A DNA stretch of 64,000 nt, taken from positions 186,001 through 250,000 of IMG/VR virus record IMGVR_UViG_3300027759_006101; one strand, written 5' to 3'. The translations under genes were made by a program, and so were the position numbers. Positions 5,560 through 64,000 of the stretch are shown piece by piece. The notes below the pieces were generated by a model that was not told where the DNA came from, did not search any database, and was given only the letters and a program-made list of their open reading frames with translations. Position 1 is the stretch's first letter; every line of letters begins with the position of its first letter.

Positions 5560-6767
5560 AGGCTCGAAATCTGTCTCCCCTCTAATGATAAAATGTTGAA
5601 GCTAAATAAGAAAGATATTCTTATGCACTAACATAAGAATATTCTAAAAGAAATAGGCTCGAAAATTTGGCCTCTCTAATTGTTTGGGAGATGAAGGTAA
5701 AGATTTATCTTACATAGAATAATACTTATTACGTCCCAAAATTTATAGTTCAATTTAGATTGTTCTCGCTTTTTCTTAAGAGCCCCGATAACTGAGACCA
5801 ATCTTTCTTCTAGTGTGAACAATCTTTATCTATATTAGACCATTCTTTAATCTAATATTTCTTTTTTTTCTCTATGGTAATAATTATTTTTCTCCCTTAT
5901 TAAAAAGCTCGAAATATATTTTCTTTCTTATATAACAAAAAATAGATCCCTCGAATTTGAAGGATCTATTTCTTTTTTAATAATGGTGTTTTAGGATATG
6001 TATTGTTCTATAATGTGTTAATATATTCCTTCTCTAATAATGTAATAAAAATATTATTCTCCATATAGTCTCCACCCTGTCTCCACTCAACCTCCACTAG
6101 TATTATAATTTTGTAATTATAATATGTGAATAATGTTATAAGGTCTCCACTGTTTTTATATTTTCTTTTTTCTGTAAATTTTTATGCTCAAAAGGTATCA
6201 AAAACTTATATTTGAGGATAAGTCTGTATTAATGCAAGGTAGCTGATTCATTAAAGGAATATGTTTCTTATATGTAGAAGAGACAAAGTCTTTATATAAT
6301 TTTAATAGTGTTTGATATGCTCGAAAATTGTTTTACTCTAATGGTGTTTATAAAAGCTCGAAATATATTGTTGTTTAGTGGTGTATTGTTTTAGTTTGTA
6401 ATATTTCATCTTGGTATAGTAGATTATTAATTATTTTGATTGTTGTTTGTTTTTCTTTAATGGCGAAAAATAATATAATGATGAGAAAGATTAATGTTAT
6501 GTATGGTTTTATGTTTTTCATTATTTGCTCGAAAATGTTTGTTTCTCTAATAGTGTTTTTGAAATTTATATTGTTCATCTATATTGTCTATGATAAATCT
6601 TTCTATATGGAATTTTAAAGATGTTTGTTCTATGTAGTCTAACATTTCTTTTGTTCTCTCTAATGGGTTTTTTAAATTGCTCAGAATATTATATAAGCTT
6701 TTCTACTAATGGGCAAAAAAGAAATGCTCGAAAAGTAGATGGATAATTTAAGTAGAATATATATTGT
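5560..6767. other. ~1.2-kb AT-rich, essentially non-coding region with iterated motifs (candidate origin or packaging control region)
   Basis: Longest gene-poor stretch in the window. Contains 9 CTCGAA and 6 CTCTAA, an 18-bp direct repeat AAAAGCTCGAAATATATT (5903 and 6352), clustered CTCCAC repeats (~6070-6150) and a hairpin AATAGATCC/GGATCTATT (~5941-5970). Confidence 0.55.
6733..6759 (+). promoter_or_regulatory. putative phage late promoter AAG(G/T)-N16/17-TAGAATA
   Basis: AAGT-N16-TAGAATA here and at 46202 (+); AAGG-N17-TAGAATA at 23011-22984 (-); AAGG-N16-TAGAATA at 50390-50364 (-). Confidence 0.5.
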
Positions 6768-12845: not shown

Positions 12846-13595
12846 ATGAAATTCAATACTAATCTTTCTGCTCCTGTGGCAAGTCCTGTAATTGGTGCGC
12901 CTGTAAGAAAACCAGTAGTAGTTTGTTGTATTCCCGGAAAAGAATTTACCCCTGGTTTTTTTGATTCTTGGACAAAGCTTACACTTGCTACTTCTCGTGG
13001 TCTTCCTTTTGACATCATTGTTTCACGACATTATTCTCCTGTAATTTTTCACTGTAGAGCAAACTTACTAGGTGCTGACAACAGAGCAGGTGTTCATCAA
13101 ATTCCATTCCAAGGAAAAATTGATTACGATTACATTATGTGGTTTGACTCAGATATCGTTTTTGAGCCTGAGCAAGTATTACAGCTTTTCACAAAAATGC
13201 AAAGAGATCGTTCGTTGGAAGTTCTTTGTGGAATTTATCTTACTACTTCTGGCACTCACTCTACCATTGTCAAGGATTGGGATTTGGATTTCTTCTTAAA
13301 GACGGGTATGTTCCCATTCTTAAGTCCAGCAGATTTAAAGAACATTGCAAGCGAATCACCAAAGAAGCTTGCTGAAGTATTCTACGCAGGTATGGGCTTT
13401 ATGATGTGTCGAAAAGGCGCATTGGAGAAAGTTACATATCCTTGGTTCGAGCCAGCAATGCACGAAATTGATATCAGTCGTGATTTTTCATCAGAAGACG
13501 TTTCATTATGTTGGAAGTGGAAGGATGCTGGAGTCAAGGTTTGGGTTGATCCTGAAGTTATTGTCGGACACGAAAAACAAATTATCATCAGATAG
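12846..13595 (+). CDS. GT-A fold (GT2-like) glycosyltransferase
   Basis: YIMWFDSDIVF (DxD), GMGFMMCRK and SEDVSLCWK...GVKVWVDP...VGHEK; start moved to ATG 12846. Confidence 0.8.
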   Translation: MKFNTNLSAPVASPVIGAPVRKPVVVCCIPGKEFTPGFFDSWTKLTLATSRGLPFDIIVSRHYSPVIFHCRANLLGADNRAGVHQIPFQGKIDYDYIMWFDSDIVFEPEQVLQLFTKMQRDRSLEVLCGIYLTTSGTHSTIVKDWDLDFFLKTGMFPFLSPADLKNIASESPKKLAEVFYAGMGFMMCRKGALEKVTYPWFEPAMHEIDISRDFSSEDVSLCWKWKDAGVKVWVDPEVIVGHEKQIIIR

Positions 13596-13596
13596 T

Positions 13597-13625
13597 AAAA
13601 AAGGTCTCTTTCGAGACCTTTTTTT
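13597..13625. terminator. bidirectional terminator
   Basis: AAAAAAGGTCTC-TTTC-GAGACCTTTTTTT. Confidence 0.9.
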
Positions 13626-13893
13626 ATTTGTAAAACTTTTCCAATTTATTTTCTAACTGAGCAAACTTTATAAAATATGGAACAAGTGAAGATAGTAATT
13701 CTGTTATCTCATTGATATTTTCTAATTTATCTTTTGATTCATTGTCTGTGTCAATCAAATTTTCAGAAACAACGTGCATCTTGAATTCTTCTGCTTTAGA
13801 TAATACAGGAGAGAAATGCTCGATAAAACTAATGAAAGAGCCTAATAATTCTTGATGTAAAACTTTATCTATTTCAATGCCAACATTTTTCAT
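13624..13893 (-). CDS. hypothetical protein
   Basis: Last ORF of a coupled - strand operon. Confidence 0.6.
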   Translation of the reverse strand: MKNVGIEIDKVLHQELLGSFISFIEHFSPVLSKAEEFKMHVVSENLIDTDNESKDKLENINEITELLSSLVPYFIKFAQLENKLEKFYK

Positions 13894-23948: not shown

Positions 23949-24481
23949 TGGTCAAAGAAAATTGGTATGCTGTTCACGTTCTTTCTCAATATGAAAATAA
24001 AGTAAAGAGCTATATTGAAAAAGTCAAGAAAGAACGTGGATTTGAAGATAAAGTTACAGAAATTATAGTTCCTGTTGACACAGAAGTTAAGAGAGTTCAA
24101 GGAAAAAAAATTGAAAAACAAAATAAAGTTTTTCCTGGATACGTTCTTGTCAAAATGAAATTAGATGATGAAACTTTTAACTTTATAAGAAGAGTTCCGG
24201 GAGTTACAAATTTTGTTTCATCTAGTGCAAAAAAACCAGTAGCACTTAAGGACTCTGAAATTAAAGCTATCTTAGATTCCCTTGACCCAAACAAAGGATT
24301 CACTCCTAAAAAGAAGTTTTCAAAAGATATGCTTGTAAGAATTATTGAAGGCCCGTTTTCAGAGTTTACTGGTAAAATTGAAACTGTTTACGAAGATAAA
24401 GAAATACTCAAGGTAATGATTTCCTTATTTGGCCGAGATACACCAATCGAAATTGAATACGCTCAAGTTGAAAGGATATAA
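23948..24481 (+). CDS. nusG: transcription termination/antitermination factor NusG
   Basis: WYAVHV...ENKVK, VFPGYVLVKM, PGVTNFV; KOW domain VRIIEGPFSEFTG...SLFGRDTPIE. Confidence 0.93.
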   Translation: MVKENWYAVHVLSQYENKVKSYIEKVKKERGFEDKVTEIIVPVDTEVKRVQGKKIEKQNKVFPGYVLVKMKLDDETFNFIRRVPGVTNFVSSSAKKPVALKDSEIKAILDSLDPNKGFTPKKKFSKDMLVRIIEGPFSEFTGKIETVYEDKEILKVMISLFGRDTPIEIEYAQVERI

Positions 24482-24509
24482 AAAAAGCTCCCTTTTGGGA
24501 GCTTTTTTT
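24481..24509. terminator. bidirectional terminator
   Basis: AAAAAAGCTCCC-TTTT-GGGAGCTTTTTT. Confidence 0.9.
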
Positions 24510-24511
24510 AT

Positions 24512-25534
24512 TTAGTATGTTTCGTAAGTTTCTGATACTGGAAGTATTTTATTGAATGTTACTAATCCATCAGCTGCTACAGCTGAAAGATTGAATCTTA
24601 CCCAATATCTTTCAGGATTAGGCGGAAGAACAACAATTGGATATCCACCAGCAATTATTCTATTTTGTTGAACTGTTAATGGATCGTTAGGAAGTAAAGT
24701 GTTAGCGGAAAAATCAGCTTTTACTGGAACCCATGTTGAACTACCAAGACCAGAGCCTTCTACAATGCCAGAGAATTTCATAGTATCTGAATTACCTGTA
24801 GAAGTATCATCAATTACTGTAAAGGAAGACCAAGCGGTCCCACTCCAAACTTGTCCTAGTAAATTAGCAGGAGCAGTAAGGCCAGTACCAACTTGGAATT
24901 CCCAGTGATCAATTTTCTTTCTTGACCCAATATAGATATAGTCTGTTGTAGCATTAAGGTTAAATTGAGAAGCATTTTCTCCACCATTACCTTTTGCAAT
25001 ACCTGTCACATCGTATATTGTTCCAGCAGTACCGCCAGTTCCAGTTTGTGCTTTTCCAACCAAAACTCTATAATCATCAATACTTTCTATACCTTGAGTA
25101 TCAGATCTAGGATAATCTAAAGGTAACGCTTTCTTACCAATCGCTGATATTCTTAAGGCAATATTGCTTCTAGACTCAGTAAATGTAAAAGCAACATTTA
25201 AGAAAGGTCTATTATATAATTGTTCGTGGTAAATTGCAGGATTAAAACCCCATCTGGCAATGAAAGATTCTGCAGCGGTAGCATTTACATCTGTGCCATC
25301 TCTGTAAATTAAATGAGCTTTACCATCTGTAGTACTATTTCTGTAATGAGCTCCCGTATTTAAAATACTAAATGCAGATACTGTAAATGCTGTGCCTGAT
25401 ACATTTGTAATTCTTAATTCATCTATTGTTGATTGGGGATACCAAGGTATAGTTGCATATACAGATGTGCCTGAAACTGTAAATCCAACTGATGACTTTA
25501 ATATTTGATTATATAAACCATTGACGACACTCAT
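24512..25534 (-). CDS. putative virion structural protein (beta-rich, G/T/S-rich)
   Basis: Composition like the tail proteins; YWVRF motif. Confidence 0.6.
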   Translation of the reverse strand: MSVVNGLYNQILKSSVGFTVSGTSVYATIPWYPQSTIDELRITNVSGTAFTVSAFSILNTGAHYRNSTTDGKAHLIYRDGTDVNATAAESFIARWGFNPAIYHEQLYNRPFLNVAFTFTESRSNIALRISAIGKKALPLDYPRSDTQGIESIDDYRVLVGKAQTGTGGTAGTIYDVTGIAKGNGGENASQFNLNATTDYIYIGSRKKIDHWEFQVGTGLTAPANLLGQVWSGTAWSSFTVIDDTSTGNSDTMKFSGIVEGSGLGSSTWVPVKADFSANTLLPNDPLTVQQNRIIAGGYPIVVLPPNPERYWVRFNLSAVAADGLVTFNKILPVSETYETY

Positions 25535-43228: not shown

Positions 43229-43989
43229 TATCTGACCTTAGAAACAAGAATTTTAACAAGAACATTTTCCAGCGCTGTATTTACGTTTCTTTGATTAACA
43301 TTGGCCTCTTCTAATGCTGTAAGAACTTCTTGTTCCGTCACTTGAATATCTTTATTGTAAGGTGAGCGTGAAGCTGCTTCTTCAATCATATCTACCATTT
43401 CAGGCACTCTTGATTTTAAATAATCATCAAAGTAATCATAGAAATCTTGGAATGGAGTTATTGCTCTAATTGCATCATTTATGGTTAAGTTATTGATTGG
43501 ATTTGCTTGAGCAAGATCTAGCAACATATCTCCTGCTTGTCCTGGGTAATTTACATCAACACCATTTTCTCTAAAAAAATCTTCTGCATCATCTTCAAGA
43601 TCTGAAATCCACATAACAGAAGTATCATCTGCGAATTCAGTTGCTTGTTCTAAAAAAGCTCTATCTTGTCCGAAAGTTTGAACACCAGATTCTTGCAATC
43701 GAGTTTGGAAATTATCAATATCTGCAGCATTAGCGACAGGAGTTGCTTCTACCATCTCAATAAAAAGATTGTTGAATTCATCCTCTGATATTTCGCCTCT
43801 TTCAAGTTTTGCCCTTAGATCAGCAAATTTATCTTTTCTTTCGTTTGGGACACTCATACCTAAAGGATCTTGTGAAAAATCAAAATCATCTGTTTGAGCT
43901 TGAACAAATTTAAAAATAGAATCTGAAGTACTATATTTGCCTTGTTTATCTAATTTGTTTGCAAGCTTAAGTAAATTGAAAATATTCAT
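43228..43989 (-). CDS. acidic hypothetical protein with shared helical leader
   Basis: MNIFNLLKLANKLDKQGKYSTSDSIFKFVQAQ. Confidence 0.7.
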   Translation of the reverse strand: MNIFNLLKLANKLDKQGKYSTSDSIFKFVQAQTDDFDFSQDPLGMSVPNERKDKFADLRAKLERGEISEDEFNNLFIEMVEATPVANAADIDNFQTRLQESGVQTFGQDRAFLEQATEFADDTSVMWISDLEDDAEDFFRENGVDVNYPGQAGDMLLDLAQANPINNLTINDAIRAITPFQDFYDYFDDYLKSRVPEMVDMIEEAASRSPYNKDIQVTEQEVLTALEEANVNQRNVNTALENVLVKILVSKVR

Positions 43990-44558
43990 TATTTGCCTTT
44001 CAAGTTATCAGATACAGACCTGCCAGCTTCCCAATTTCTGCACGACCAGTAACGAGCTTTAGTTTTTGGCCCTGGATTATCGCAATTATGTCTAGCTCTA
44101 AAATTCTTTCTTCTATTTGGGTTGTTTCTTTTTATGCTGAGGCCTGGATCGCCGAAGTTAACTTTGATGATATTTCCCTTGTCATTCTTTACATAAACAG
44201 AAAATTTCTTTGGACCACCTGGAGTACGAAAAGGCTTATTAAGTTTCTTGCCTTTGTTCTTATCCGATGCTGTTTTATGTTCACTTTTTAAGTAATCAGA
44301 CACTCCATCAAGCATTTCTACAGCATTAGTAATCTTTGACTGAACCCAAGCCATAAGATTGCCTTCGCCTTCTTCACCTACGACATCTTCAATGTTTTCG
44401 ATTGCTCTTTCTGCTGTTTCCATTTGATTTCTGACCATATCGTATTCGTGATCATAATCATTGGAAGCAGTCTTTATCAAAGATGTAATTTTATCTGCTA
44501 ATCTATGTGCTTGATTGTTGTCAAGTTCGTTAGCTAAATCGGCTAATATTTCTAACAT
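43989..44558 (-). CDS. shared helical leader plus two cyanophage-type head modules
   Basis: Start at ATG 44558 (AGGA RBS); DHEYDM...AWVQSKIT and KLNKPFRTPGGPKKFSVYV...RARHNCD...ARYWSC. Confidence 0.75.
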   Translation of the reverse strand: MLEILADLANELDNNQAHRLADKITSLIKTASNDYDHEYDMVRNQMETAERAIENIEDVVGEEGEGNLMAWVQSKITNAVEMLDGVSDYLKSEHKTASDKNKGKKLNKPFRTPGGPKKFSVYVKNDKGNIIKVNFGDPGLSIKRNNPNRRKNFRARHNCDNPGPKTKARYWSCRNWEAGRSVSDNLKGK

Positions 44559-44559
44559 A

Positions 44560-44958
44560 TTATATTCCTGCCTTGAAAGTAAAATCATAAGTAAAAGGCG
44601 TAAGTCCAACAGAAACAATTGGATTGTTTAATAGTCCAAATGTCACAACGCCTGTAACTGCTGTCCCTGCAGTTGATCCAATAGAGTTTAAGATTATAAG
44701 TCTTGCTGTATCTGCAAATGTTGACATTGTAGTATAAGCTAAACCACTAAAATTAGTTTCTACATAATCAACTGCATCTGAATAACTTGTAGTAGAACCA
44801 ATGCCCTCATAAAATGTAGTTAAATCAAAAATATTAAGGTATTTTTTAGTAAGGGGTGCGACTGAATTGGTCAATGTATAAAAAACTTCAACAATACTTC
44901 CAGATTTTGTGATTGAATTGATTGTGTAGTTTACAGAAACAGTTATTCCGATTGCCAT
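44560..44958 (-). CDS. putative structural protein
   Basis: T/S/G-rich 132-aa ORF, GGAG RBS. Confidence 0.6.
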   Translation of the reverse strand: MAIGITVSVNYTINSITKSGSIVEVFYTLTNSVAPLTKKYLNIFDLTTFYEGIGSTTSYSDAVDYVETNFSGLAYTTMSTFADTARLIILNSIGSTAGTAVTGVVTFGLLNNPIVSVGLTPFTYDFTFKAGI

Positions 44959-45008
44959 AATAAACTCCTATACAAGTTATTTGTTCTTAAATCGAGAATA
45001 AAAATCCT

Positions 45009-45425
45009 ATGAAACGCTTTCTTAAATTTTGTTCAGATTTGGATGAATTAGGTTATATTGAGGAGTCTGATAAACTTTTTAACAAATATGCCTACACTCA
45101 TAATGAATTGTTGAAAAAGCAAATATTAATTCCATCTAATGTAAAATCAACTGCTACTAAAGCATATGGTTACAGAAATAAAGACATAAAATTTGGAACT
45201 ATAGAAGACATTGAAGTTGCAAGGCAGCTTACACAAAGAAGTTATCTTGAGCTTGATACTGTTTTGAAAATTCATAAAATTACAGCAAAAAAATGGCATT
45301 CTCGTAGTAAAAAAGATGACAATCCTACTTATTGGGAATATCTTTGTTATGGCGGGGATGATGGGAAAAGCTGGGCTGAAAATATAATAAAAATCTACTT
45401 ACAAAAGGAATGGAAAATTAATTAG
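45009..45425 (+). CDS. helical-leader protein with ARQL...YGGD.G..WA module
   Basis: MKRFLKFCSDLDELGYIEESDKLFNKYA. Confidence 0.7.
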   Translation: MKRFLKFCSDLDELGYIEESDKLFNKYAYTHNELLKKQILIPSNVKSTATKAYGYRNKDIKFGTIEDIEVARQLTQRSYLELDTVLKIHKITAKKWHSRSKKDDNPTYWEYLCYGGDDGKSWAENIIKIYLQKEWKIN

Positions 45426-45444
45426 TTTGTAGTATAATAATCTT

Positions 45445-46200
45445 GTAAGCAATTTGACAAAAGAATATGGAAATCGGTGGCTTGACGTCGTAAGATAATA
45501 ATAAAGGGATAAAGTAATTCTCTACTGCTCCCGCCAAATAAAATTGGTCAGTCAAGCAAGCTCAATCTTTGTGAGTTTCAAGCACAGAACTTGGAAATAT
45601 GGAATAAGATGAAAGCGGACTTATATACGCTGAATATAAGCCAAGCACAGCATCATCGAAGCCTAAAAGATGAAGAGTAATTATAAGGTTCGAGAAGTCA
45701 CGATTAAGAGCTTTATAGTATGATGAGAGGTTTTGCGGAAGATACAATTTAATTCCTTCCGTTATAGTCTCAAAATCAGGTCTAAATACTTTGTGGAGTA
45801 TTAGGCATTGAAGTGAGTTGTATTCCTTATCCAGGAGCAACAAGATACGCACACTTCTGTAGAGAGCGGGTATAGAATTATTAAAGAGATCGCAATCCGT
45901 TGATAAGATAACAATAATTCACTCAAGAAATAGACGTATCTCGTGTTAGTTGTAAACAATCAAAAAATAAAAAGTGTAATGCAACAAACACTTAAAACAT
46001 AGTGCAGATGCTTAAACATCTAAAATTTCACTTATGTTTAAAAGACTAACATTAGACTAGAAATGCCACTAGTTTAAAAAGGCGATTGTGTAGTTTGACT
46101 GTAAAGTGGATAAGCAAGCAATCTATAAGTTGCGAGTAGAGTAATCTTGCAAACGAAACTACAGGGCTAGAAATAATCTCATTCTAGCCCTTTACTTTTT
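45445..46200 (+). ncRNA. putative large structured ncRNA (~750 nt; GOLLD/ROOL-class candidate)
   Basis: TATAAT at 45433-45438; no credible ORF; at least 9 helices (e.g. GCTTGAC 45480/GTCAAGC 45551 and TGTAGTTT 46089/AAACTACA 46156); 3' terminator. Confidence 0.65.
46163..46200 (+). terminator. intrinsic terminator closing the ncRNA
   Basis: AGGGCTAGAA...TTCTAGCCCT followed by TTACTTTTT. Confidence 0.85.
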
Positions 46201-46245
46201 TAAGTGTCTATGATAAAAACATAGAATATTAATTTGAGGAATATT

Positions 46246-46701
46246 ATGAAAACACAATTTTTATTATTAACATTATCTTTATCTTCTTTGTGTTTTGGCC
46301 AACAATTTGGAAATAATTTTTCACAAAATCCATATTCAGAATCATATTTTGTAAAGCCTAATCAAACTTTATTAAATGCAAATGTAAAACTTAAAAAACT
46401 TCCAGGTTTTGAAGTAAACATTGATAGCTTGCATAAAGGCACAGATTTATCTGCATCAGAAAAACACAAATTGCTGATGGGTTACAATTATAAGTCACCT
46501 ATAGGTACGTTCAATTTTTCTGCCGGGAACACAAAAATGCCAGGATTTGTTGAAGATAAGAAATCACTTTCTGCATCTTATGTACTCAAAAATAAATGGA
46601 GTGATTTTAAATTTTCTTATGAAAATAATAATAATTTATTACCAAACTCTAATAAATTCAGTGACCCTAGATTAGTTGTTTCCGGTTCTTTCATTTTATA
46701 A
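46246..46701 (+). CDS. exported beta-rich protein (signal peptide)
   Basis: MKTQFLLLTLSLSSLCFG; GAGGA RBS; late-type promoter upstream. Confidence 0.65.
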   Translation: MKTQFLLLTLSLSSLCFGQQFGNNFSQNPYSESYFVKPNQTLLNANVKLKKLPGFEVNIDSLHKGTDLSASEKHKLLMGYNYKSPIGTFNFSAGNTKMPGFVEDKKSLSASYVLKNKWSDFKFSYENNNNLLPNSNKFSDPRLVVSGSFIL

Positions 46702-46718
46702 GGTACAATGAACGTATT

Positions 46719-47612
46719 ATGGAAAAAACACCAGAATACGCATTAGAAGCTGGAATTGCTGTTTGGACTGCTGATAATCAAGATATTGTCAAGTGCGCTC
46801 TTGAATTAGCTACAGTATCAACTAACTTAGGATTAGTTGATACAAATCAAAACTCTTTTATGGGAATTGTTCCTACTGAAGTTTTTGGTCCAGATGGCAA
46901 TTTGATTCACGAATGTTTTTTAAACATCAATCATATGGCTTGGGGATATTTTAAGATTATCATCAAGTCAATTTCTCATTTTGAAGTAATTGCTCCAAGA
47001 CTTACTACTTTCAAGAATCAAATCTTGCTTTCACAACAAGAAGCTTTAGATTTCATTAAAGATCTTGCTACGTCTCTTGATGATTTATATCTGCTTGAGT
47101 CATTCCTTGAAAAAGAAGAAATTCGTGATGCTGAAAAATTACTTGAAAATATGCTTATTGGATATCACGAAGCAGTAAAGCACGAACTTATTTCAATCAA
47201 AGAATATATTTCTAGTTTTCCAGGCAAGATGTATATTCAAAGCACAAATAGTGATGACAAGCAATATATTGATGATATTCCTAATCGTTATGATTTAGCC
47301 TTACAACACCCTGAAAACTGGCATATCGAGTTCTTTGATGGCATCGGTACTACAGAGCAAGAAGATAAGGAATTTCGTAAGAGACTTTCAGAATTTCAGA
47401 AGCTTGAAAATCATTATGCTTGTAGGTTATATCTAGCACAGAAAATTGTGTTAGAATCTAAGCGTAGGTTGACTGTTTTGACAGATAGTGAAGTTCCTGA
47501 GCCTGATACTAGCGGTGAAGTCTTGTATGATAAAGGATTGGGACTTGCTCTTGTTCGACCTGTAATTCACTGTATTGGAATGAGAATAGATTATGAATTC
47601 TTATGTTCGTAA
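46719..47612 (+). CDS. hypothetical protein
   Basis: 297-aa ORF. Confidence 0.7.
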   Translation: MEKTPEYALEAGIAVWTADNQDIVKCALELATVSTNLGLVDTNQNSFMGIVPTEVFGPDGNLIHECFLNINHMAWGYFKIIIKSISHFEVIAPRLTTFKNQILLSQQEALDFIKDLATSLDDLYLLESFLEKEEIRDAEKLLENMLIGYHEAVKHELISIKEYISSFPGKMYIQSTNSDDKQYIDDIPNRYDLALQHPENWHIEFFDGIGTTEQEDKEFRKRLSEFQKLENHYACRLYLAQKIVLESKRRLTVLTDSEVPEPDTSGEVLYDKGLGLALVRPVIHCIGMRIDYEFLCS

Positions 47613-48300
47613 AGATTATGCCAGAAAAACCAGCAACAAATACTCTCAGGCTCAACTTGATGTAGCAGGTAAATATTGCACAAAAATTATTTGCCTGTAT
47701 TTATTTAAAGAAATTGCGCCTGAATACACACTTGACTTGACTGAAAAATATATTTTTGGTGACATTATAACTCGTACAAATGATAAGTTTGTCCGAGCAA
47801 GTGAGAGTGAATGCAAGGGTACTAAGTTGTTTGATATGGTTTGGAATCTCAAATGGGAGCCAAACCTATTGAAAAAGAAAGGCTTAGAACAATTTAGCTC
47901 TATTTTTAAGACTGATGTTACAGGAAGTGTGGAAGTTTTAGATTATTCAAAAATAACTCAAACTTCAATATACACTGGACATAGACTTTCAAAACCAGAA
48001 GATATATTTGAATTTTATCATTTCCTCTTTCCTTTAGAAGAAGCAATGGAATGTATGAATAATAAAACTTTTCCCTCAAGGTTTATTTATTGGAAGTTGA
48101 ATCCTGAAATTTACGGACTTCAATATAAAGAAGAAATTTCATCTGATGCTGATGGAAATAAATTTAAGGAACTCAAATCCAAAGTTCCATTGAAGTATAT
48201 TGAAAGAATTACATTTAATTCTGACACAGGTAAATTTACAAGATTAGAAAAATATAAGACATACACTAAGAATGATGGAAACTTAACATATGAATATTAA
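47593..48300 (+). CDS. hypothetical protein (possible PD-(D/E)XK: GD...ESECK)
   Basis: 235-aa coupled ORF; motif weak. Confidence 0.55.
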   Translation: MNSYVRKDYARKTSNKYSQAQLDVAGKYCTKIICLYLFKEIAPEYTLDLTEKYIFGDIITRTNDKFVRASESECKGTKLFDMVWNLKWEPNLLKKKGLEQFSSIFKTDVTGSVEVLDYSKITQTSIYTGHRLSKPEDIFEFYHFLFPLEEAMECMNNKTFPSRFIYWKLNPEIYGLQYKEEISSDADGNKFKELKSKVPLKYIERITFNSDTGKFTRLEKYKTYTKNDGNLTYEY

Positions 48301-56132: not shown

Positions 56133-59100
56133 TTAAACTTCGTTTAATGTAAATGACACTGAGAAGTTGGCGTGAGTAGCATTCAATAAATTAAAGTTCA
56201 ATCTCAAAAGATTTCCTGAAGTTACAAAAGTGCCTGCTACAAATGTGTTAGTTGTAGTCACATAAATGCCTGCACCAGAAAGGGTCAAACCTGAACCTCC
56301 AATTAAACTTGACCCTGTAGCAGCAAGAGTAAATGCTCCAGTGTCGGTCGAAGATCTTTCAAGTTGAATTCTTGAAGAGCCAGCAGATGGTGTTTCTACC
56401 CTTACATTAAATTCAGTAAGTATGAAAGTTTGCTTCGTAGCACCATCTTCAGAAGAGTCAGGTATTAGGTAAATTATGTTATCTGGACCGGCTGCCAAAG
56501 GTGTATATCCTGCTGCCATCCAAACATGGTGCTCCATTTTATTTCTTAGAACAACACGATTGCCTGTAACAGATGTAGTTGCTAATCCACCCTCCAGAGG
56601 GGCAAAGAACATATTTCCAGATGTATCAACTAATATTGTTGAATATCCATTACCGACAGGAGCTGTAGGTAAAGATAATGTATAGTTTGTAGCAACATTC
56701 GAAGCTTGAATAGCAGCGTATCGTGAGTTGTCAGCATTAAAAAATCTTACATCATTCTGCGCTCTCAAATCAAAGTTTGTAAATACAGAAATTGCAGTGC
56801 CAGCTTCGTGAATGTATATAGTGTCTGTAGCACCATTATTGACGGCAAATCTTATTGGGTGAGATGTTGTAGTACCCAAAACTAATGGCCCACTTGTAGC
56901 AGCCAAATAAGTTGCATTTGGCGCAAATAAGGCTCCTGAACCAGTAAAGGTACTAGAGTTCATACCAATTTCACCATAATTTGCAGCGTCTGTGCTTATA
57001 TCATTATTGACAACTAAATTGGCTGATGCACTAGTACCATTAGATTTATTTTGAATGACAAGTTGATTATATGAGTTGACAGTAGAAACAAATGAAGCTA
57101 GATTATTAGGAATGTTATAGCTTGGGGTTGTTCCTACAGATAAAGTAGTACCAACAAATAAACTCTTTGCAATTCCAGCCCCACCGTCAACTTGAAATGC
57201 GCCTGTTGTTGTAGATGTAGACTCTGTAGTATGAGTAATTTCTACTACTCCAGTTGAAGTATTGTTTGTAAATGTATTAGAACCAGAAACTGAAGCACCA
57301 GTTCCTGCATAATATGCTACTGAATATTGAGCATTAGGAATTGCTACTGTTCCTGAACCTGCTCCAGAAGAGCCACCTGATGGTGCAGCCACCCAAGCCA
57401 TAACTCCAGTGGTACTTGCAGACAAAAAGGATGTTCCAGTTCCAGAAGGGTAAGCAAGCGGAAGAGTATACGTCAAATTGGCTGCTTGTGAAGCGCTTGT
57501 TGTCAGTGTGTTGTTATTTGTTCGTGTTGCATATGAAGAGCTAGTAATGGTAAGGTCTGCAACTGTGGTTTTGCCAACATAATCCACTTTGAAAACTGAA
57601 AGATTAGATGGAGGTGAACCATTATCAAATTTTGCATCAATAAAGTTATATTGAGCTCCATTCAATGATGTATTACTCAGGGCTAAAAGTGTTCCAGTTG
57701 CAGAACCTGTAAAGTTTACAGAGTTATTTTCTCCTATCAATAATGCAAAATTTGTTGAACTGCCAGTGTTATAATTTATGGTTTTCAACATTCCAGTAGC
57801 GTTTGCATAATTGAAAGTCGATGACGCAGCAAAATTTCCAGTGCCAGAATTATATTGAACATCGCCAACAGACCCTGAAGGGGATCCACCACCACCACCA
57901 GCAGGAGCAGCCACCCAAGCCATAACACCAGCTTGTGTAGATGTCAAGAATGAAGCTCCAGCACTAGAAGGGGATGTTGGTGGAAGTATATATGTAGTGT
58001 TAACTCCAGACTGAGCGCTTGCAAATGCAGTATATAAACTACCGTTGAACATTTGTAATCTGCCACCAATGCTGACAGACAATCCAATTCCAACTCCACC
58101 TGTCGCTATTAAACCACCTACTCCAGGAGTTGTGGAATTGATATTTGACTCAAAGCGAGAAGCATCACCAACGTAAAGACTTCCACCAATCCCAGCTCCT
58201 CCTGTGACAGTTAAAGCCCCAGTTCCATTTGATATTGCTGCAATTGAAGAAGAAAATCTTGAAGCACCCGCAACATACAAACTCCCACCTATGCCAACTC
58301 CACCAATTGCTTGCAGAGCTCCAGTAGTAGTATTAATTGCTGCTGCCGTTCCAACTACTGTTATTGCTGTCCCTGCAGAAATTCCTACTGCAGCAAATGT
58401 TCCTCTTGCTGGATTTATTTGGATGGTATTTACAGTTGATAATCCTAAGCCTGTACCTGATGCTGCAGATATTACTGTTGGATAAAAGACTGCATCAACA
58501 ACGGTACTGCTAACTGCTACTGAGGATGCTGCTGAAGGAGGGACTGCAGCCCATATAGGTGCTGTACCCGGACCTTGGGCAGTCAGAACTTGATTTGTTG
58601 AACCAGAGGGAAGTTTACCTAATGATGTCGCAGTTGCAGCATATAATATATCCCCAACTGCATATGTATTAAATCCAGTACCACCGTAGAATGATGTGAT
58701 AGTGGAACCAGACCAAGTTCCTACAGTTACTAATCCATTATTTAGAACTACACCTGAAATGCTTGATGGAACTGATGTGCTAGTAAATACTGAACCACCA
58801 ATACCAACACCACCAGTTACTGTCAATGCTCCAGTTCCTGAACTTATGGATGAAGCGCTAGAGGTAAATCTTGAAGCTCCTCCAGCAAATACGGACCCAC
58901 CAATGCCTACTCCCCCAGTTACAACTAGAGCTCCACTGCCCACATCTATGGCAGCTGTAGTGGCTTCAAACTCGGATGGTAATGCTACATTTAAACTTCC
59001 GCCGATTCCAACGCCACCAGTGACTGTTAGTGCCCCGGTGCCTGAATTTAAAGATGCAATACTAGAAGTAAATCTAGAGGCTTCGCCTACATATAATGAA

Positions 59101-61544
59101 CCAGCAATTCCAGCTCCACCTGTCACGGTCAATGCCCCAGTTCCAATAGAAATTGCTGTGGCAGTTGAGGAGAACCTGGATGCTCCTCCTGCATTTATGC
59201 TTCCCCCAATTCCTACTCCACCAGTTACCACCAATGCGCCAGATCCAACATTTATTGAAGCTACCGATGATTCAAACTGTGAAGCAGATGCTACATACAA
59301 GCTTCCACCGATACCCACACCACCAGACACTGTAAGTGCTCCAGTTCCAGAAGATGATGCAACATTAGTGGCAGAGAATCTCGAAGCACTTCCTACAAAT
59401 AATGAGCCACCAATACCAACTCCTCCTATTACTTGTAGCGCCCCAGTAGTTGTGCTTGATGCTACTGCATTGCCTACTACAGTTATGGCAGTTCCAGCAG
59501 ATATACCAACTGCTGCAAAAGTTCCTCTAGCAGGGTTAATCTGAATAAAAGGAACTGTAGATAAACCTAATCCAGCGCCTGATACAGCGGACACTACGGT
59601 TGGATAAAAAACTTGATCTAATACGGTACTGATGACTGCTACCGATGATGCTGCAGATGCTGGCACTGCTACCCAAGTTACACCAGAAGGCGATGTAGCG
59701 CTGGCTGTTAGGACAAAATTATCTGAGCCAACTCCCTGTCTTATAAATGTATTACCAAAACCTACTAAAATATCGCCTTTTGTGTATGTGTTAAATCCGG
59801 TACCACCGTAAAAGGCCGTTATAGTTGAACCTGCCCAAGTCCCTTGATTCACCACACCCTGTATTACAGACAATCCCGAAATACTTGCACCAATTCCACC
59901 AACATACAAGCTTCCACCAATACCCACACCGCCAGACACTGTAAGTGCTCCTGTAGCAGAAGTTGTTGATACTGTAGCGTGAGATATATTTACTACACCA
60001 GTTGAAGTGTTGTTTGTAAACGTAGCAGAACCTGAAACAGAGGCGCCAGTTCCAGCATAATAAGCTACTGAGTGTTGAGCATTTGGAATTGCTACTGTAC
60101 CCGAACCAGCTCCAGAAGATGAAGATGCCACCATAGGAACCCAAGACATTACACCTTCCGCTGTTGATTGTAAAACTGATGATCCTGTAGCGGGAGTTGT
60201 TGCAGGAAGCGTATAAACTGTATTTCCTGTTCCTGAACTTACAAATGCTGTTACATTTGCTCCATTAAGTAATTGTAATCTGCCTGCCACACTAATTGAT
60301 TTTGCAAATCCAGCTCCGCCTGAAACTACTAAGCCACCTGTCGTAGATGATATAGAATTGTCAGTTGAATTGAACGTAGCTTTTCCTGTTGCTGCACCAA
60401 TATTCATTGCAGTAGCGGCACCAAATGCATTTATGGTTGTTGCATTTGTATTAAAAACAGCAAAAGTTGCGTCACCTGTAGTGACTCCTGTACCAAATGA
60501 AGGTTGAGTATTGAAGACTAAAACGCCTGAACCTGTTTCATCAGTTATTGCACTAAGTATTGCTGACGAGGTGGTTGAGGCAGAAACAGTACCAGAAGAT
60601 ATGGTCAATACACCAGAGGAAGAACCTAAGTTTTGCCCAGTTCCGCCATAAGTAGTAGATATAGCAGTACCGTTCCAAGTCCCTCTAGTTATTGTTGAAT
60701 TTGAAAAAGTGACGCCAGTTATACTTGCGCCAATACCTCCAACATACAAACTTCCGCCAATACCGACACCACCCGTGACTTTGAAGGCTCCGGTACTAGA
60801 ATCTGTTGCAACTGTAGCATGTGTAATACTTACTACACCTGTAACAGTGTTATTAGTAAAGGTATTAGATCCTATAACAGAAAGTCCAGTGCCAGGATAA
60901 TAGGCCATTTCATATTGGCCACCTTGTCCTACTCCAGCAGTGCTTCCTGTGCCTCCAGACCCAGTAGCAGTTGCCCAAGTAAGTGTAGCTGAACCGTTTG
61001 TTTGTAAAAATTGACCTGATGAACCATCTGTTGTTGGAAGCGTATATGTTATGTTTGTCGCAGCGTTAGATTTAAAGCCTGTGTAAAAAGTATTTCCAGA
61101 ATTATAAAGTAGTAAAGAATTTGCTGACCGTATTGATAAACTATTACTTCCTGATACTGCTGAATTACTAAAAATAAAATTATATAAACCATCATTGGAA
61201 GAAGCTAAACCAAAACTTCCCTTAAGATCTAATTTATATATAGGATTTGTTTGTCCAATTCCTACAATACCGCCATAAACTGCAAGGCCAACAGTTCCAC
61301 CAGCACTTGAAGACAATAATGGAACACCAGAAATATCTGACACAGCCCAGATTGTTCCTGAAGATAAGTTAGAGTCAATAGAAAAAACTTGTCCTTCATT
61401 ACTTGTGAAAGAAAGTGTATTATCATCTAAAACTTCAAGAGTAATAACTGATGAGCCAGCAGCAGAACCAGTAAAGACAATATTAGGATAAGTTGTCTTA
61501 TTTTTACTAGTTGTGATTCTTATATTTTTATCGGAGTTTGCCAT
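56133..61544 (-). CDS. giant Gly/Thr/Ser-rich tail fibre protein with GAL.V.GGVGIGGS repeats
   Basis: Tandem 34-aa repeats, duplicated modules and repeated YTLP...G.M.WV hinges. Confidence 0.8.
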   Translation of the reverse strand: MANSDKNIRITTSKNKTTYPNIVFTGSAAGSSVITLEVLDDNTLSFTSNEGQVFSIDSNLSSGTIWAVSDISGVPLLSSSAGGTVGLAVYGGIVGIGQTNPIYKLDLKGSFGLASSNDGLYNFIFSNSAVSGSNSLSIRSANSLLLYNSGNTFYTGFKSNAATNITYTLPTTDGSSGQFLQTNGSATLTWATATGSGGTGSTAGVGQGGQYEMAYYPGTGLSVIGSNTFTNNTVTGVVSITHATVATDSSTGAFKVTGGVGIGGSLYVGGIGASITGVTFSNSTITRGTWNGTAISTTYGGTGQNLGSSSGVLTISSGTVSASTTSSAILSAITDETGSGVLVFNTQPSFGTGVTTGDATFAVFNTNATTINAFGAATAMNIGAATGKATFNSTDNSISSTTGGLVVSGGAGFAKSISVAGRLQLLNGANVTAFVSSGTGNTVYTLPATTPATGSSVLQSTAEGVMSWVPMVASSSSGAGSGTVAIPNAQHSVAYYAGTGASVSGSATFTNNTSTGVVNISHATVSTTSATGALTVSGGVGIGGSLYVGGIGASISGLSVIQGVVNQGTWAGSTITAFYGGTGFNTYTKGDILVGFGNTFIRQGVGSDNFVLTASATSPSGVTWVAVPASAASSVAVISTVLDQVFYPTVVSAVSGAGLGLSTVPFIQINPARGTFAAVGISAGTAITVVGNAVASSTTTGALQVIGGVGIGGSLFVGSASRFSATNVASSSGTGALTVSGGVGIGGSLYVASASQFESSVASINVGSGALVVTGGVGIGGSINAGGASRFSSTATAISIGTGALTVTGGAGIAGSLYVGEASRFTSSIASLNSGTGALTVTGGVGIGGSLNVALPSEFEATTAAIDVGSGALVVTGGVGIGGSVFAGGASRFTSSASSISSGTGALTVTGGVGIGGSVFTSTSVPSSISGVVLNNGLVTVGTWSGSTITSFYGGTGFNTYAVGDILYAATATSLGKLPSGSTNQVLTAQGPGTAPIWAAVPPSAASSVAVSSTVVDAVFYPTVISAASGTGLGLSTVNTIQINPARGTFAAVGISAGTAITVVGTAAAINTTTGALQAIGGVGIGGSLYVAGASRFSSSIAAISNGTGALTVTGGAGIGGSLYVGDASRFESNINSTTPGVGGLIATGGVGIGLSVSIGGRLQMFNGSLYTAFASAQSGVNTTYILPPTSPSSAGASFLTSTQAGVMAWVAAPAGGGGGSPSGSVGDVQYNSGTGNFAASSTFNYANATGMLKTINYNTGSSTNFALLIGENNSVNFTGSATGTLLALSNTSLNGAQYNFIDAKFDNGSPPSNLSVFKVDYVGKTTVADLTITSSSYATRTNNNTLTTSASQAANLTYTLPLAYPSGTGTSFLSASTTGVMAWVAAPSGGSSGAGSGTVAIPNAQYSVAYYAGTGASVSGSNTFTNNTSTGVVEITHTTESTSTTTGAFQVDGGAGIAKSLFVGTTLSVGTTPSYNIPNNLASFVSTVNSYNQLVIQNKSNGTSASANLVVNNDISTDAANYGEIGMNSSTFTGSGALFAPNATYLAATSGPLVLGTTTSHPIRFAVNNGATDTIYIHEAGTAISVFTNFDLRAQNDVRFFNADNSRYAAIQASNVATNYTLSLPTAPVGNGYSTILVDTSGNMFFAPLEGGLATTSVTGNRVVLRNKMEHHVWMAAGYTPLAAGPDNIIYLIPDSSEDGATKQTFILTEFNVRVETPSAGSSRIQLERSSTDTGAFTLAATGSSLIGGSGLTLSGAGIYVTTTNTFVAGTFVTSGNLLRLNFNLLNATHANFSVSFTLNEV

Positions 61545-61587: not shown

Positions 61588-62256
61588 TTATGGTAATCTG
61601 AATCTACCTTTCATTGCATCGTAATGTTGTTTAACTTGTAAATCGGATAATGCATCACCTATATTCAACCAAATAAAACCAATAGCACCATCACAGCCAA
61701 TATAGTCAAACACTTTAGAGTCTCCAGAACCTGTACCATTAGCGCTTAATCCAGTGAATGTAGTAAAAACAGAACCATTTACATACATAGTAGCAGCGGT
61801 ACCAGAACGTGTATATGCATAGTGTCGCCAAACATCATCTGTCATACCAAGTCCAGAGGTAGTAAAATCAACATTATGATGTCTCATAGTTACCTGGCCA
61901 GCAGCATTATGGCTAAATGTCAAAACATTGGATTGAATCTGCATAATTGTAGAATCAGTCCCTGTCTGTGCTACTTTATAAGAAAAAAATAAAGTATACT
62001 TATCACTAGTCTCGTTTCCAACTTGTTCTATTCTTTGCGAGAATTGTTGCTTGCTTGTTTGCTTGACATATTTTGAAACTCCCGAGCCAGCAATTAAATT
62101 CGTGGTGTTTGTCATAGTCCAATCTGTATATCCTCTGAATCTAAAAGGATTATTAAATGTAAATCCAGTTCCAGGGTACAAAACATTACTAGATGGGTCT
62201 AAAATATTATCAAATGTTTCCCAATATGGAACATTGGGGCCGCCTTTTACTCCCAT
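61588..62256 (-). CDS. LamG/ConA-like domain virion protein
   Basis: WRHYAYTRSG...MYVNG...ALS..QVKQHYDAMKGRF. Confidence 0.75.
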   Translation of the reverse strand: MGVKGGPNVPYWETFDNILDPSSNVLYPGTGFTFNNPFRFRGYTDWTMTNTTNLIAGSGVSKYVKQTSKQQFSQRIEQVGNETSDKYTLFFSYKVAQTGTDSTIMQIQSNVLTFSHNAAGQVTMRHHNVDFTTSGLGMTDDVWRHYAYTRSGTAATMYVNGSVFTTFTGLSANGTGSGDSKVFDYIGCDGAIGFIWLNIGDALSDLQVKQHYDAMKGRFRLP

Positions 62257-63521
62257 TATGGTAATCCAAATCTATTTTTAATAGAATTATATTGTGTAGA
62301 TATTTCTGTTGCCGTAAGCGCTCTGTTATATATTTGACAAAAACCAATATTGGCAGTAATTCCAGCATTGGAGCCGGAATCTGACTTTTCCATAAAAAAT
62401 CTGAATCTGGAAGTAGAATCATAAGTCATATCCGATGTGTCTGTTAAATTAGCACTATTTTCAGCAGATGTTCCAACAGCAGCACCATTAAAATAAATCT
62501 TAAATGCGCTTTCTACTCCTGCAATTGTTGTTGGAGGTGTGCCAGTATAAGTTATAGCGTAATGAAGCCAACGTCTATGATAAAGAGAATATCTTGTAAC
62601 ACCACCGGGATTTGTTCCTTGTGAATATCCAAAATCAAGATTGTCAGACAGATTACCCTTACCAGCATTCCAATGAGTGATGCTTGATCCTGTTGCTGGA
62701 AACCAAGAAGCGCTAAAATTGTATAGGTTATTTCTCCAACCATTATTTCCAATTATAATTGGGCCTGTCAAAACTGTACTGCCTGTAGAAGTTTGTAAAT
62801 CTGCTTTTAACTGCGATATATAAGGAACGAATCTATAAGTAGTAGATTTTTGAAGAGGGAAAATTGTAGCTGATGATGTGAATTCAAAAATATTACTATT
62901 TTGCCAAGTTAATATATATGTTTGCCCAAAACTTGATGTAGCACTTGTAGAAACAAAAGGTCCAGCTTGTCCACTAAAATATGTTTGTCCATAGTCTCCC
63001 CAAGATATAGCAGTTCCAGCATAGACCCTTCTGCCACCAAAAAATAAATCATTAGCAAGAACAAAAGTTAATTTAGTTGAAGATTCAGGATATAAAGCCC
63101 ATCCTTTATTATTGACAAATCCATTGACCATAAATCCAGATCTATATTCATTAGAATTATTCGCCCATTGCAAGACACAAATTACTGTAAACGGAGTGCT
63201 ATTATTCAATTCAAATGTAGAATCTTTAATTTCTCTTTCTGTTGTTTGTTGTGTATATGCTCCAGAAATAAATGATTTTGGAGGGTTTCTAATCAAAGGA
63301 GCAGTCCAAGCATCAGTTGCACCAGACAAATGAAATGACTGCATTAATTGATTGGGATTTATAGTGGATGAATATTTTTGCATACTAACACCTAATCCAC
63401 TTCCTAAATCAACGTATTGAAAAATTCTTTGAGAACTTGCATCAAATTCAAAGGTCAAGTTACTAGAAAAGTCTTGCCCTCTATTTTCACTTAATTTTCT
63501 TTGTCCAACTTTACTTCCCAT
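62256..63521 (-). CDS. LamG/ConA-like domain virion protein
   Basis: LTFEFDAS; WLHYAITY...IYFNG...IYNRALT..EI..QYN.IKNRFG. Confidence 0.75.
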   Translation of the reverse strand: MGSKVGQRKLSENRGQDFSSNLTFEFDASSQRIFQYVDLGSGLGVSMQKYSSTINPNQLMQSFHLSGATDAWTAPLIRNPPKSFISGAYTQQTTEREIKDSTFELNNSTPFTVICVLQWANNSNEYRSGFMVNGFVNNKGWALYPESSTKLTFVLANDLFFGGRRVYAGTAISWGDYGQTYFSGQAGPFVSTSATSSFGQTYILTWQNSNIFEFTSSATIFPLQKSTTYRFVPYISQLKADLQTSTGSTVLTGPIIIGNNGWRNNLYNFSASWFPATGSSITHWNAGKGNLSDNLDFGYSQGTNPGGVTRYSLYHRRWLHYAITYTGTPPTTIAGVESAFKIYFNGAAVGTSAENSANLTDTSDMTYDSTSRFRFFMEKSDSGSNAGITANIGFCQIYNRALTATEISTQYNSIKNRFGLP

Positions 63522-64000
63522 TATGTTAGCCCAAACCTACTTTTTAAGGCATTATAATTTTTAGCGTGTTCAGCAGCAGAAAGTTGTCTATTGTATAAGA
63601 GGCACATAGCAATTCTCCCTTGAAAATCTCTTACTGCCCCACTATACCCTTCTGTCCCTAAAAAATATGTAAATGATGCCGGAAATGTTGTTTGATTAGT
63701 TCTATAAGCACCTAATATATTCCACCCATTTACTAAAGATGCACCATCAGCTACTGCTGAACCATTAACATAATAAGTAGTACCAGGATTTCCCCAGTCA
63801 TCACCATTAAGACCTGCTGACGCTCTAACAGTCCAAGGACCAGTGCCATTTGCATTATTAAATCTCATACTTTTATCTGTATTTGTAGTGTCATTTGAAG
63901 CTGCTATCAGACCTACCAATGCTGCATTACTGTTCAGTGCAAAATCAGGGTAAAATACAATAGTACAATCTAAATATTGTTGAGACAAAGTTGATGAAAT
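63521..64000 (-). CDS. LamG-like domain virion protein, 5'-truncated by window edge
   Basis: Frame is open to base 64000; C-terminus LYNRQLS..EH.KNYNALKSRFG. Confidence 0.7.
   Translation of the reverse strand: MSSTLSQQYLDCTIVFYPDFALNSNAALVGLIAASNDTTNTDKSMRFNNANGTGPWTVRASAGLNGDDWGNPGTTYYVNGSAVADGASLVNGWNILGAYRTNQTTFPASFTYFLGTEGYSGAVRDFQGRIAMCLLYNRQLSAAEHAKNYNALKSRFGLT

Follow-up and report, generated by a model that had tools for sequence, protein, structure and literature searches.

The window analyzed here is a stretch of 64,000 nt from a 358-kb viral contig (IMGVR_UViG_3300027759_006101) that was recovered from a freshwater metagenome. The contig encodes a GroEL-type chaperonin, ThyX, RuvB, a Y-family polymerase, and an Fe-S assembly protein, and a superoxide dismutase gene occurs near the corresponding locus in relatives, a gene set that fits a jumbo phage. 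Between the stop codon of a gene encoding a 138-aa protein (45009 to 45425, + strand) and the start of a gene encoding a 151-aa protein (46246) lies a gap without a usable open reading frame (ORF): each of the three + frames contains 21 to 29 stops across 45426 to 46245. Because all three stop types occur in every + frame, a reassigned stop codon cannot rescue an ORF, and we rule out stop-codon reassignment as the cause of the gap. The GC content over 45400 to 45850 (0.35 to 0.37, versus 0.26 to 0.32 in the surrounding sequence) is at about the level of the neighboring coding DNA.

The 138-aa neighbor is predicted to be helical (pLDDT 78) and has no Pfam, PHROGs, or PDB relative, nor did a protein atlas return anything useful. 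Its residues 38 to 135 resemble, on predicted structure only, a small helical domain (TM 0.53 to 0.63 in AlphaFold DB) that is fused elsewhere to portal, prohead-protease, and XkdF proteins and whose role is unknown. This neighbor gives no hint about the role of the RNA described below. In IMG/VR, the flanking proteins have close relatives on the window's own contig only, neither flanking protein has a match in cultured phages (tblastn), and a search with GroEL yielded no lineage; given flanking genes without relatives in cultured phages, the host is unknown.

Several features elsewhere in the window merit description in their own right. Ten copies of the motif GCTCGAAAW (0.75 expected), all on the + strand, are found between 5400 and 6734 and also at 2159 and 2963; eight of the 10 copies lie in or beside a 1.2-kb gene-free stretch (5560 to 6767), and most are followed after 10 to 14 nt by a TCTCTAAT-like box. 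This cluster resembles phage-specific promoters or short transcription units, although we regard this as no more than a possibility. An ORF of 1,803 aa (56133 to 61544, − strand), for which there is no Pfam or PHROG match, carries some eight copies of a repeat of 102 nt (34 residues) within 58146 to 60824 and is likely to encode a repetitive fiber or surface protein. Adjoining it on the same strand are three ORFs (222, 421, and 155 aa; 61588 to 63988) whose similar 40-nt 3′ ends specify a related C terminus, and the middle one has a weak match to Laminin_G_3; these might be paralogous receptor-binding proteins. Finally, two near-identical palindromes (13591 to 13629 and 24475 to 24513; 82% alike), each with A-run and T-run flanks and situated between convergent genes, look as if they could be shared bidirectional terminators.

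Homologues of the gap sequence were obtained by an indirect route. The exact motifs that were scanned first came from the contig ends of relatives and yielded no homologues; the motif CAGCANCATCGAAGCCTAA returned 11 matches in IMG/VR, all of them in one unrelated protein gene. Homologues were instead fetched by using an antisense ORF within the gap (45565 to 45852, − strand) as a protein query, which retrieved at least 27 database protein clusters (P0001 to P0027; 56 to 159 aa) whose starts, stops, and frames disagree. Alignment of these relatives exposed an invariant 19-mer (45598 to 45616), and a scan with this 19-mer recovered 40 more homologous metagenome loci but no homologue in one genome per bacterial or archaeal species and none new in IMG/VR. 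The remaining 19-mer matches (16 in metagenomes, nine in genomes, and two in viruses) are due to chance, being nonhomologous by blastn, nhmmer, and a covariance model. The resulting alignment (A4) comprises 49 nonredundant sequences, i.e., the window plus 48 relatives from freshwater metagenomes, which are 80 to 100% identical to the window. Within IMG/VR, the window's contig alone carries the sequence, which is single copy in the window (a search for further copies found none), and blastn against 50,697 phage records detected no similar DNA. It is likely that the carriers form a clade of uncultured freshwater jumbo phages. Mean identity to the relatives is 87%, whereas the neighboring 138-aa gene reaches 78% at the DNA level. 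The noncoding sequence shows the higher identity in 29 of 31 relatives: it evolves at a slower rate than the protein gene beside it. Conservation is greatest in a 5′/central core (45500 to 45870; 84 to 96% identity).

That this conservation might reflect a protein, encoded either by the antisense ORF or by small + strand ORFs, is all but excluded. In favor of such a reading, gene callers have called the antisense ORF in the 27 or more database clusters noted above. Against it, the full antisense ORF (45562 to 45852, − strand; 96 aa with a GTG start) is intact in only seven of 46 relatives, with frame-shifting length changes in 29 and premature stops in 10, and its variable sites are distributed over the three codon positions (40/53/39) without any third-position bias. 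On the + strand, the longest ORFs span 27 to 60 aa and are not conserved, and the sole candidate is cut by a 1-nt indel polymorphism. By sequence comparison, the unit has no conserved ORF on either strand and is noncoding; the antisense ORF is a chance ORF, not a gene, and the "hypothetical proteins" in those database clusters are spurious antisense calls on relatives of an RNA gene.

The noncoding sequence has the boundaries of a transcription unit. At its 5′ end is a promoter −10 element (45431 to 45438, + strand; TATAAT at 45433 to 45438), which reads AGTATAAT in the window and TGTATAAT, an extended −10, in most relatives; no conserved −35 element was found among the relatives, and the sequence upstream of the −10 box is not conserved where the upstream gene differs. 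Transcription is inferred, from the spacing after the −10 box, to start at about 45445 to 45448, at the head of a moderately conserved 5′ leader (45445 to 45479); the earliest contig from an RNA run begins at 45460, and the 5′ end is unresolved. At the 3′ end is an intrinsic terminator (46164 to 46200, + strand) with a 9- to 10-bp stem, a conserved 9-nt loop, and a U-tract; the hairpin spans 46164 to 46190 and the U-tract extends to 46200. Five of the nine stem pairs have changed on both sides among relatives, and it is owing to the 9-nt loop that a simple terminator scan missed this element. Homology among relatives coincides with these signals, starting at 45426 or 45431 and ceasing at 46204.

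Rearrangements of the neighboring genes leave the unit intact. It usually sits between the 138-aa gene and a gene of 291 or 297 aa, and the 151-aa gene found downstream in the window is absent from most relatives. An insertion of about 1.9 kb separates the 138-aa gene from the unit in three relatives (L017, L045, and L082); in L017, the insert consists of a UDP-galactopyranose mutase gene, which adjoins the unit in the opposite orientation, and a 248-aa gene, yet the −10 box is retained and homology to the window begins exactly at 45431. That the unit survives such changes on either side argues that its promoter and terminator are its own and that it is not an untranslated region (UTR) of either neighbor. 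We conclude that 45431 to 46200 (+ strand) is a self-contained transcription unit, with its own −10 box and terminator, for an RNA of ~750 nt. The auxiliary genes beside the locus themselves differ among relatives, including the UDP-galactopyranose mutase (L017, 926 to 2035), a 2-hydroxyacid dehydrogenase (L027, 2497 to 3492), and an Fe superoxide dismutase (L015, 1227 to 1892); the neighborhood is thus a variable region in which the RNA itself is kept.

The RNA is abundant in the environment. Sequence from this stretch is present in 14 DNA runs, and RNA runs, numbering at least 24 and drawn from more than a dozen studies of lakes, rivers, an estuary, and sediment, contain 20 to 59% of sampled words from the 776-nt unit but only ~20% of words from a 1.9-kb stretch that includes the flanks. 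We mapped depth over 43900 to 47900 for four RNA runs from four studies. In X20, depth is 900 to 1,350 (peak, 1,355) over 45508 to 46043 and 318 over 46044 to 46177, with 0 to 35 in the upstream flank and 0 from 46178, after which it reaches at most 4.7. The other runs are shallower and show the same confinement: 2.7 to 25 over 45508 to 46177 with flanks at 0 (X16), 1.9 to 13.5 over the same interval with flanks at 0 to 1.8 (X17), and 1.5 to 2.9 over 45508 to 46043 with flanks at 0 to 0.9 (X15). In all four runs, depth is 0 from 46178 on. Contigs identical to the window occur in RNA runs, including a 389-nt contig with zero differences in X16. Since DNA contamination would give even depth, the signal represents RNA, at levels well above those of neighboring messages. 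These values are contig depths given by the assembler for runs that were selected for containing the RNA; they add up related strains and carry no strand information, so that the ratio of unit to flank is only semiquantitative. The drop in depth to the left of 45508 falls in a variable, indel-rich segment where assemblies break and accordingly leaves the 5′ end unresolved. With these limits, environmental samples contain far more of this RNA than of RNA from its flanking genes.

These data also bear on the possibility that the sequence is a cis-acting part of an mRNA, serving the 138-aa gene as a 3′ UTR or the downstream gene as a leader. In support of this reading, one contig (depth, 35) runs from the 138-aa gene into the first 135 nt of the unit, indicating some read-through from upstream, and there is no terminator between the two. 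Against it, both the −10 box and the sequence are kept when a divergently oriented gene replaces the upstream gene, as in L017, the downstream gene differs among relatives, and depth falls to 0 after the terminator. We consider a cis-acting role very unlikely.

Comparative evidence supports an elaborate fold of the + strand. This strand folds better than shuffled sequences (z = −4.2, versus −2.5 for the − strand), and RNAalifold applied to 35 full-length sequences predicts 203 pairs in about 30 helices. Over the 49 sequences, 97.1% of cells in these pairs are canonical, versus 39 to 40% when the 3′ partners are slid by one to three columns; 58 of the 203 pairs have changed on both sides, versus 12 to 22 in the slid versions and 27 ± 3 in shuffles (0 of 300 reach 58). 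By the criterion of at least 92% canonical cells plus at least three sequences changed on both sides, 33 of the 82 variable structure pairs (40%) covary, versus 0.49% of 20,000 random variable column pairs. A separate check, in which 46 matches to a covariance model of the subdomain from 45678 to 45808 were realigned with Infernal, showed 98.9% of cells to be paired and changes on both sides in 17 of 35 pairs, versus 7.3 ± 1.7 in shuffles (0 of 500 reach 17) and two to four in slid versions. Paired cells include 1,052 G-U but only 66 A-C combinations, an excess indicating that the + strand is the folded strand. As all relatives are at least 80% identical, many covarying cells trace to few events. 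In a search for pseudoknots or long-range covariation, no signal exceeded the phylogenetic background, nor did we find a conserved palindromic loop, as would suit a symmetric kissing contact; the loop 45827 to 45833 and the segment 46107 to 46113 are complementary in the window, but the loop varies without compensation, and this contact is not supported. What emerges is a conserved, multidomain fold of the + strand with two hypervariable peripheral hairpins.

From 5′ to 3′ (all on the + strand), Domain 1 (45480 to 45557) is closed by a helix (45480 to 45486 with 45551 to 45557) that encloses a GNRA hairpin and hairpins at 45506 to 45532 and 45533 to 45548; it is 99% paired, with compensatory change at 45481/45556, 45515/45527, and 45537/45544. 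The GNRA loops, identified by eye, are GUAA at 45490 to 45493 and a second at 46101 to 46104, which is GUAA in the window and GAAA in most relatives. Domain 2 (45560 to 45678), the most conserved part of the RNA, has helices 45560 to 45563 with 45675 to 45678 and 45565 to 45570 with 45666 to 45671, which lead into a three-way junction with a hairpin (45574 to 45598) and an arm (45601 to 45663), and it contains the invariant 19-mer. Its UAUGG and CCUAA(A/G) strands bear a possible resemblance, noted by eye only, to a GAAA-tetraloop receptor; the motif is situated at the three-way junction, which is not the classical context. Next comes a long hairpin (45680 to 45719) of 14 pairs (99.6% paired), six of which have changed on both sides; the 13 nt at its apex, GAGAAGUCACGAU (45692 to 45704), are invariant.

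The central part of the RNA continues with a branched arm and a further hairpin (together 45721 to 45806), both supported by covariation: the arm (45721 to 45778) has a hairpin tip (45735 to 45762) of variable length, and in the hairpin (45780 to 45806) seven of eight pairs have changed on both sides. A hairpin formed by UUGUAUUCC and GGAGCAAC (45817 to 45841) follows, with UA↔AU swaps at 45818/45840 and 45827/45833, and then a domain (45843 to 45941) closed by pairing of 45843 to 45850 with 45933 to 45941, which holds a hairpin (45855 to 45866) and the variable arm HV1 (45872 to 45924), whose apical stem is replaced in some subclades. The hairpin region from 45943 to 45993 allows two mutually exclusive pairings of the 3′ strand 45987 to 45993. 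Beyond it, the hypervariable hairpin HV2 (45994 to 46043; 42 to 71 nt) cannot be aligned between subclades, although all of its versions fold as long hairpins (mean z = −2.9, with z < −1 in 31 of 32 variants); in one RNA run, a relative has 93 nt in place of 77 nt here. HV2 separates the core from a conserved 3′ domain (46044 to 46163), which consists of a hairpin (46052 to 46077) and a multiloop closed by 46089 to 46097 with 46154 to 46163, inside which are the hairpin with the second GNRA loop and an arm (46114 to 46150) with seven pairs changed on both sides.

A structured noncoding RNA gene of ~750 nt had been proposed at this locus from the sequence alone, and that claim is now supported by covariation, by transcript abundance confined to the unit, and by decay of the antisense ORF. 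An 800-nt gap, a −10 box at 45433, and a strong terminator at 46163 to 46200 were all upheld; its GC content was said to exceed that of other intergenic DNA, and it does exceed that of the surroundings, but the comparison with other intergenic DNA was not measured. Among the individual helices named, those at 45480/45551, 45620 to 45640, 45735 to 45762, 45785 to 45802, and 46089/46156, together with the TCCT/AGGA pairing, are present in the consensus of the 35 full-length relatives, each with compensatory changes. The AAGTG/CACTT helix (45811 to 45815 with 45852 to 45856) remains possible: there is so little variation in its columns that the alignment cannot settle the pairing, and the coordinates of the sole test were one base off. 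The AAGTGT/ACACTT helix (45972/45993) is in competition with another pairing that uses its 3′ strand, each of the two having one or two compensatory events, and the AGATG/CATCT helix (46006 to 46021) is strain specific, falling within the hypervariable hairpin. Translation and conservation of the antisense ORF, which would have refuted the proposal, did not hold.

The RNA matches no known family. Searches of Rfam 15 gave no match at gathering scores over the whole window, only chance matches at E ≤ 10 over 45300 to 46350, and no family match at E ≤ 1 in six relatives; weak matches to VrrA, mir-458, and IMES-1 were discarded, the terminator hairpin alone having matched. The Rfam models unmatched include those for GOLLD (RF01998), ROOL (RF03087), OLE, HEARO, raiA, tmRNA, RNase P, group I and II introns, and 6S RNA. 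ARAGORN detected no tRNA or tmRNA in the 64-kb window or in 31 fetched loci (28 from relatives and three from the window's own contig), and no prior description of the RNA was found in the literature searched. GOLLD and ROOL are encoded by phages and prophages and form RNA-only cages; they often lie beside tRNA islands, an association that is frequent but not obligatory, and GOLLD has a universally conserved 3′ region, a less conserved 5′ region, and a variable linker (bioRxiv 10.1101/2024.12.08.627333). The cages are homo-oligomeric nanocages, of 14 subunits for GOLLD and eight for ROOL. The view that the RNA belongs to GOLLD or ROOL as a highly divergent member finds support in its phage origin, similar length, and abundance and in a variable interdomain segment reminiscent of the GOLLD/ROOL linker (bioRxiv 10.1101/2024.12.08.627333). 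Counting against membership, neither covariance model was matched in the window (E ≤ 10) or in six relatives (E ≤ 1), and no tRNA lies near the RNA in 32 loci; we deem it very unlikely. The original prediction had offered a GOLLD/ROOL-class RNA or a new giant phage RNA as alternatives, and it is the second that held, along with the absence of an adjacent tRNA and of tmRNA, RNase P, and intron hallmarks (by the Rfam models, and by ARAGORN for tmRNA). A suggested resemblance of the 3′ module to GOLLD/ROOL found no support, there being no Rfam match at E ≤ 10 and no tRNA association.

As to function, the size of the RNA, its number of conserved stems, its nearly invariant core, and its tolerance of variable arms lead us to infer that it acts in trans as a folded particle; by the same inference, its features fit those of large structured RNAs and not those of base-pairing regulators or leaders. 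We propose that the RNA is made during infection and would act in trans as a stable, compactly folded particle, binding or enclosing some component of the host or phage in the role of a scaffold or decoy, as has been proposed for ROOL and GOLLD. Higher-order assembly may also occur. On this proposal, the RNA would not act by coding, by regulating a neighbor in cis, or as a DNA site. A new RNA gene with such a scaffold or decoy mode of action is the account that we favor, with moderate confidence; the mode is inferred by analogy, and there are no partner, oligomer, or phenotype data.

The main rivals to this account are a sponge or regulator and a ribozyme. Were the RNA a sponge for protein or RNA, or a regulatory RNA, its unpaired conserved segments would titrate a regulator or defense protein of the host or pair with mRNAs of host or phage, and the fold would merely present conserved single-stranded segments. 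Consistent with this are the invariant unpaired segments (45598 to 45616, 45692 to 45704, and the terminator loop), the great abundance of the RNA, and its terminator hairpin with a U-tail, as found in many trans-acting bacterial RNAs. Inconsistent with it are a length of 750 nt and ~200 conserved pairs, which amount to far more structure than in known sponges or base-pairing RNAs, and the lack of any repeated binding motif in a repeat search and by inspection. With the host unknown, no sponge target can be tested; we judge this reading unlikely. Still less probable is that the RNA is a new large ribozyme whose substrate is the RNA itself or a molecule of the host or phage. Its size, multidomain architecture, GNRA loops, and receptor-like motif (recognized by eye) are typical of large ribozymes, and the core is almost invariant, but there is no match to a ribozyme or intron model, there are no flanking exons, and no internal joint or end recurs consistently in the RNA contigs (depth is 10 to 41 at the three skips in X20, versus ~1,000).

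Beyond the scaffold or decoy account, a bolder reading remains possible: the RNA could represent a third, unrelated family of giant phage RNA, forming, as GOLLD and ROOL do, an RNA-only or RNA-dominated higher-order particle, or else a new large ribozyme. If so, giant self-organizing RNAs would be a recurrent invention of phages and not two curiosities, and this one would be produced in very large amounts by jumbo phages with a wide distribution across lakes and rivers. Few bacterial or phage RNAs of unknown function are very large and intricately folded (OLE, GOLLD, ROOL, HEARO, and raiA), and each such large RNA has opened new RNA biology, the latest instance being RNA-only nanocages. For further study, the ends are known to ~15 nt (the 5′ end by inference), 49 natural variants with a covariation-supported structure are in hand, the peripheral hairpins are replaceable, and there is evidence of high natural abundance; in vitro transcription and cryo-electron microscopy are feasible without a cultured host. 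The spurious "hypothetical proteins" that public protein databases contain from the antisense strand of the RNA can, moreover, serve as handles for fetching homologues of a noncoding gene.

The RNA can be set against several known systems. An earlier screen of IMG/VR for structured RNAs identified virus-encoded candidates by covariation, all 29 to 151 nt in length and each required to occur in at least three IMG/VR regions (PMC10690425); the RNA described here is five times longer and is present on only one IMG/VR contig. OLE (RF01071) is likewise a large, ornate, structured noncoding RNA (~600 nt) with strong covariation, but it is a cellular RNA of anaerobic and extremophilic Firmicutes that has partner proteins (OapA/B/C), whereas the new RNA has a phage context, no match to the OLE model, and no conserved partner gene that we could see. 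With ROOL, it shares an origin in phages or prophages, a length of several hundred nucleotides, high abundance, the lack of a known protein partner, and an unknown function; it differs from ROOL in failing to match the covariance model and in lacking tRNA islands in its vicinity, ROOL comes from other hosts and habitats (Firmicutes and the rumen), and the two folds could not be compared by the tools used. In kind, GOLLD and ROOL come nearest to it. The new RNA and GOLLD are both phage encoded, very large (~750 nt, versus >800 nt for GOLLD), rich in conserved stems, strongly expressed, of unknown function, endowed with a variable segment between conserved domains, and first seen in lake metagenomes. 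Unlike GOLLD, the new RNA has no covariance-model match and no adjacent tRNAs, and its pattern of conservation is reversed, with the 5′/central core being the most conserved. It meets the criteria for "ornate" large RNAs in being >500 nt, noncoding, built of covariation-supported stems, equipped with its own promoter box and terminator, and visible as a discrete block of RNA depth. That the locus holds a new structured noncoding RNA gene is very likely, and we place it in a new family of large structured phage RNAs that is GOLLD/ROOL-like in kind but a member of neither.
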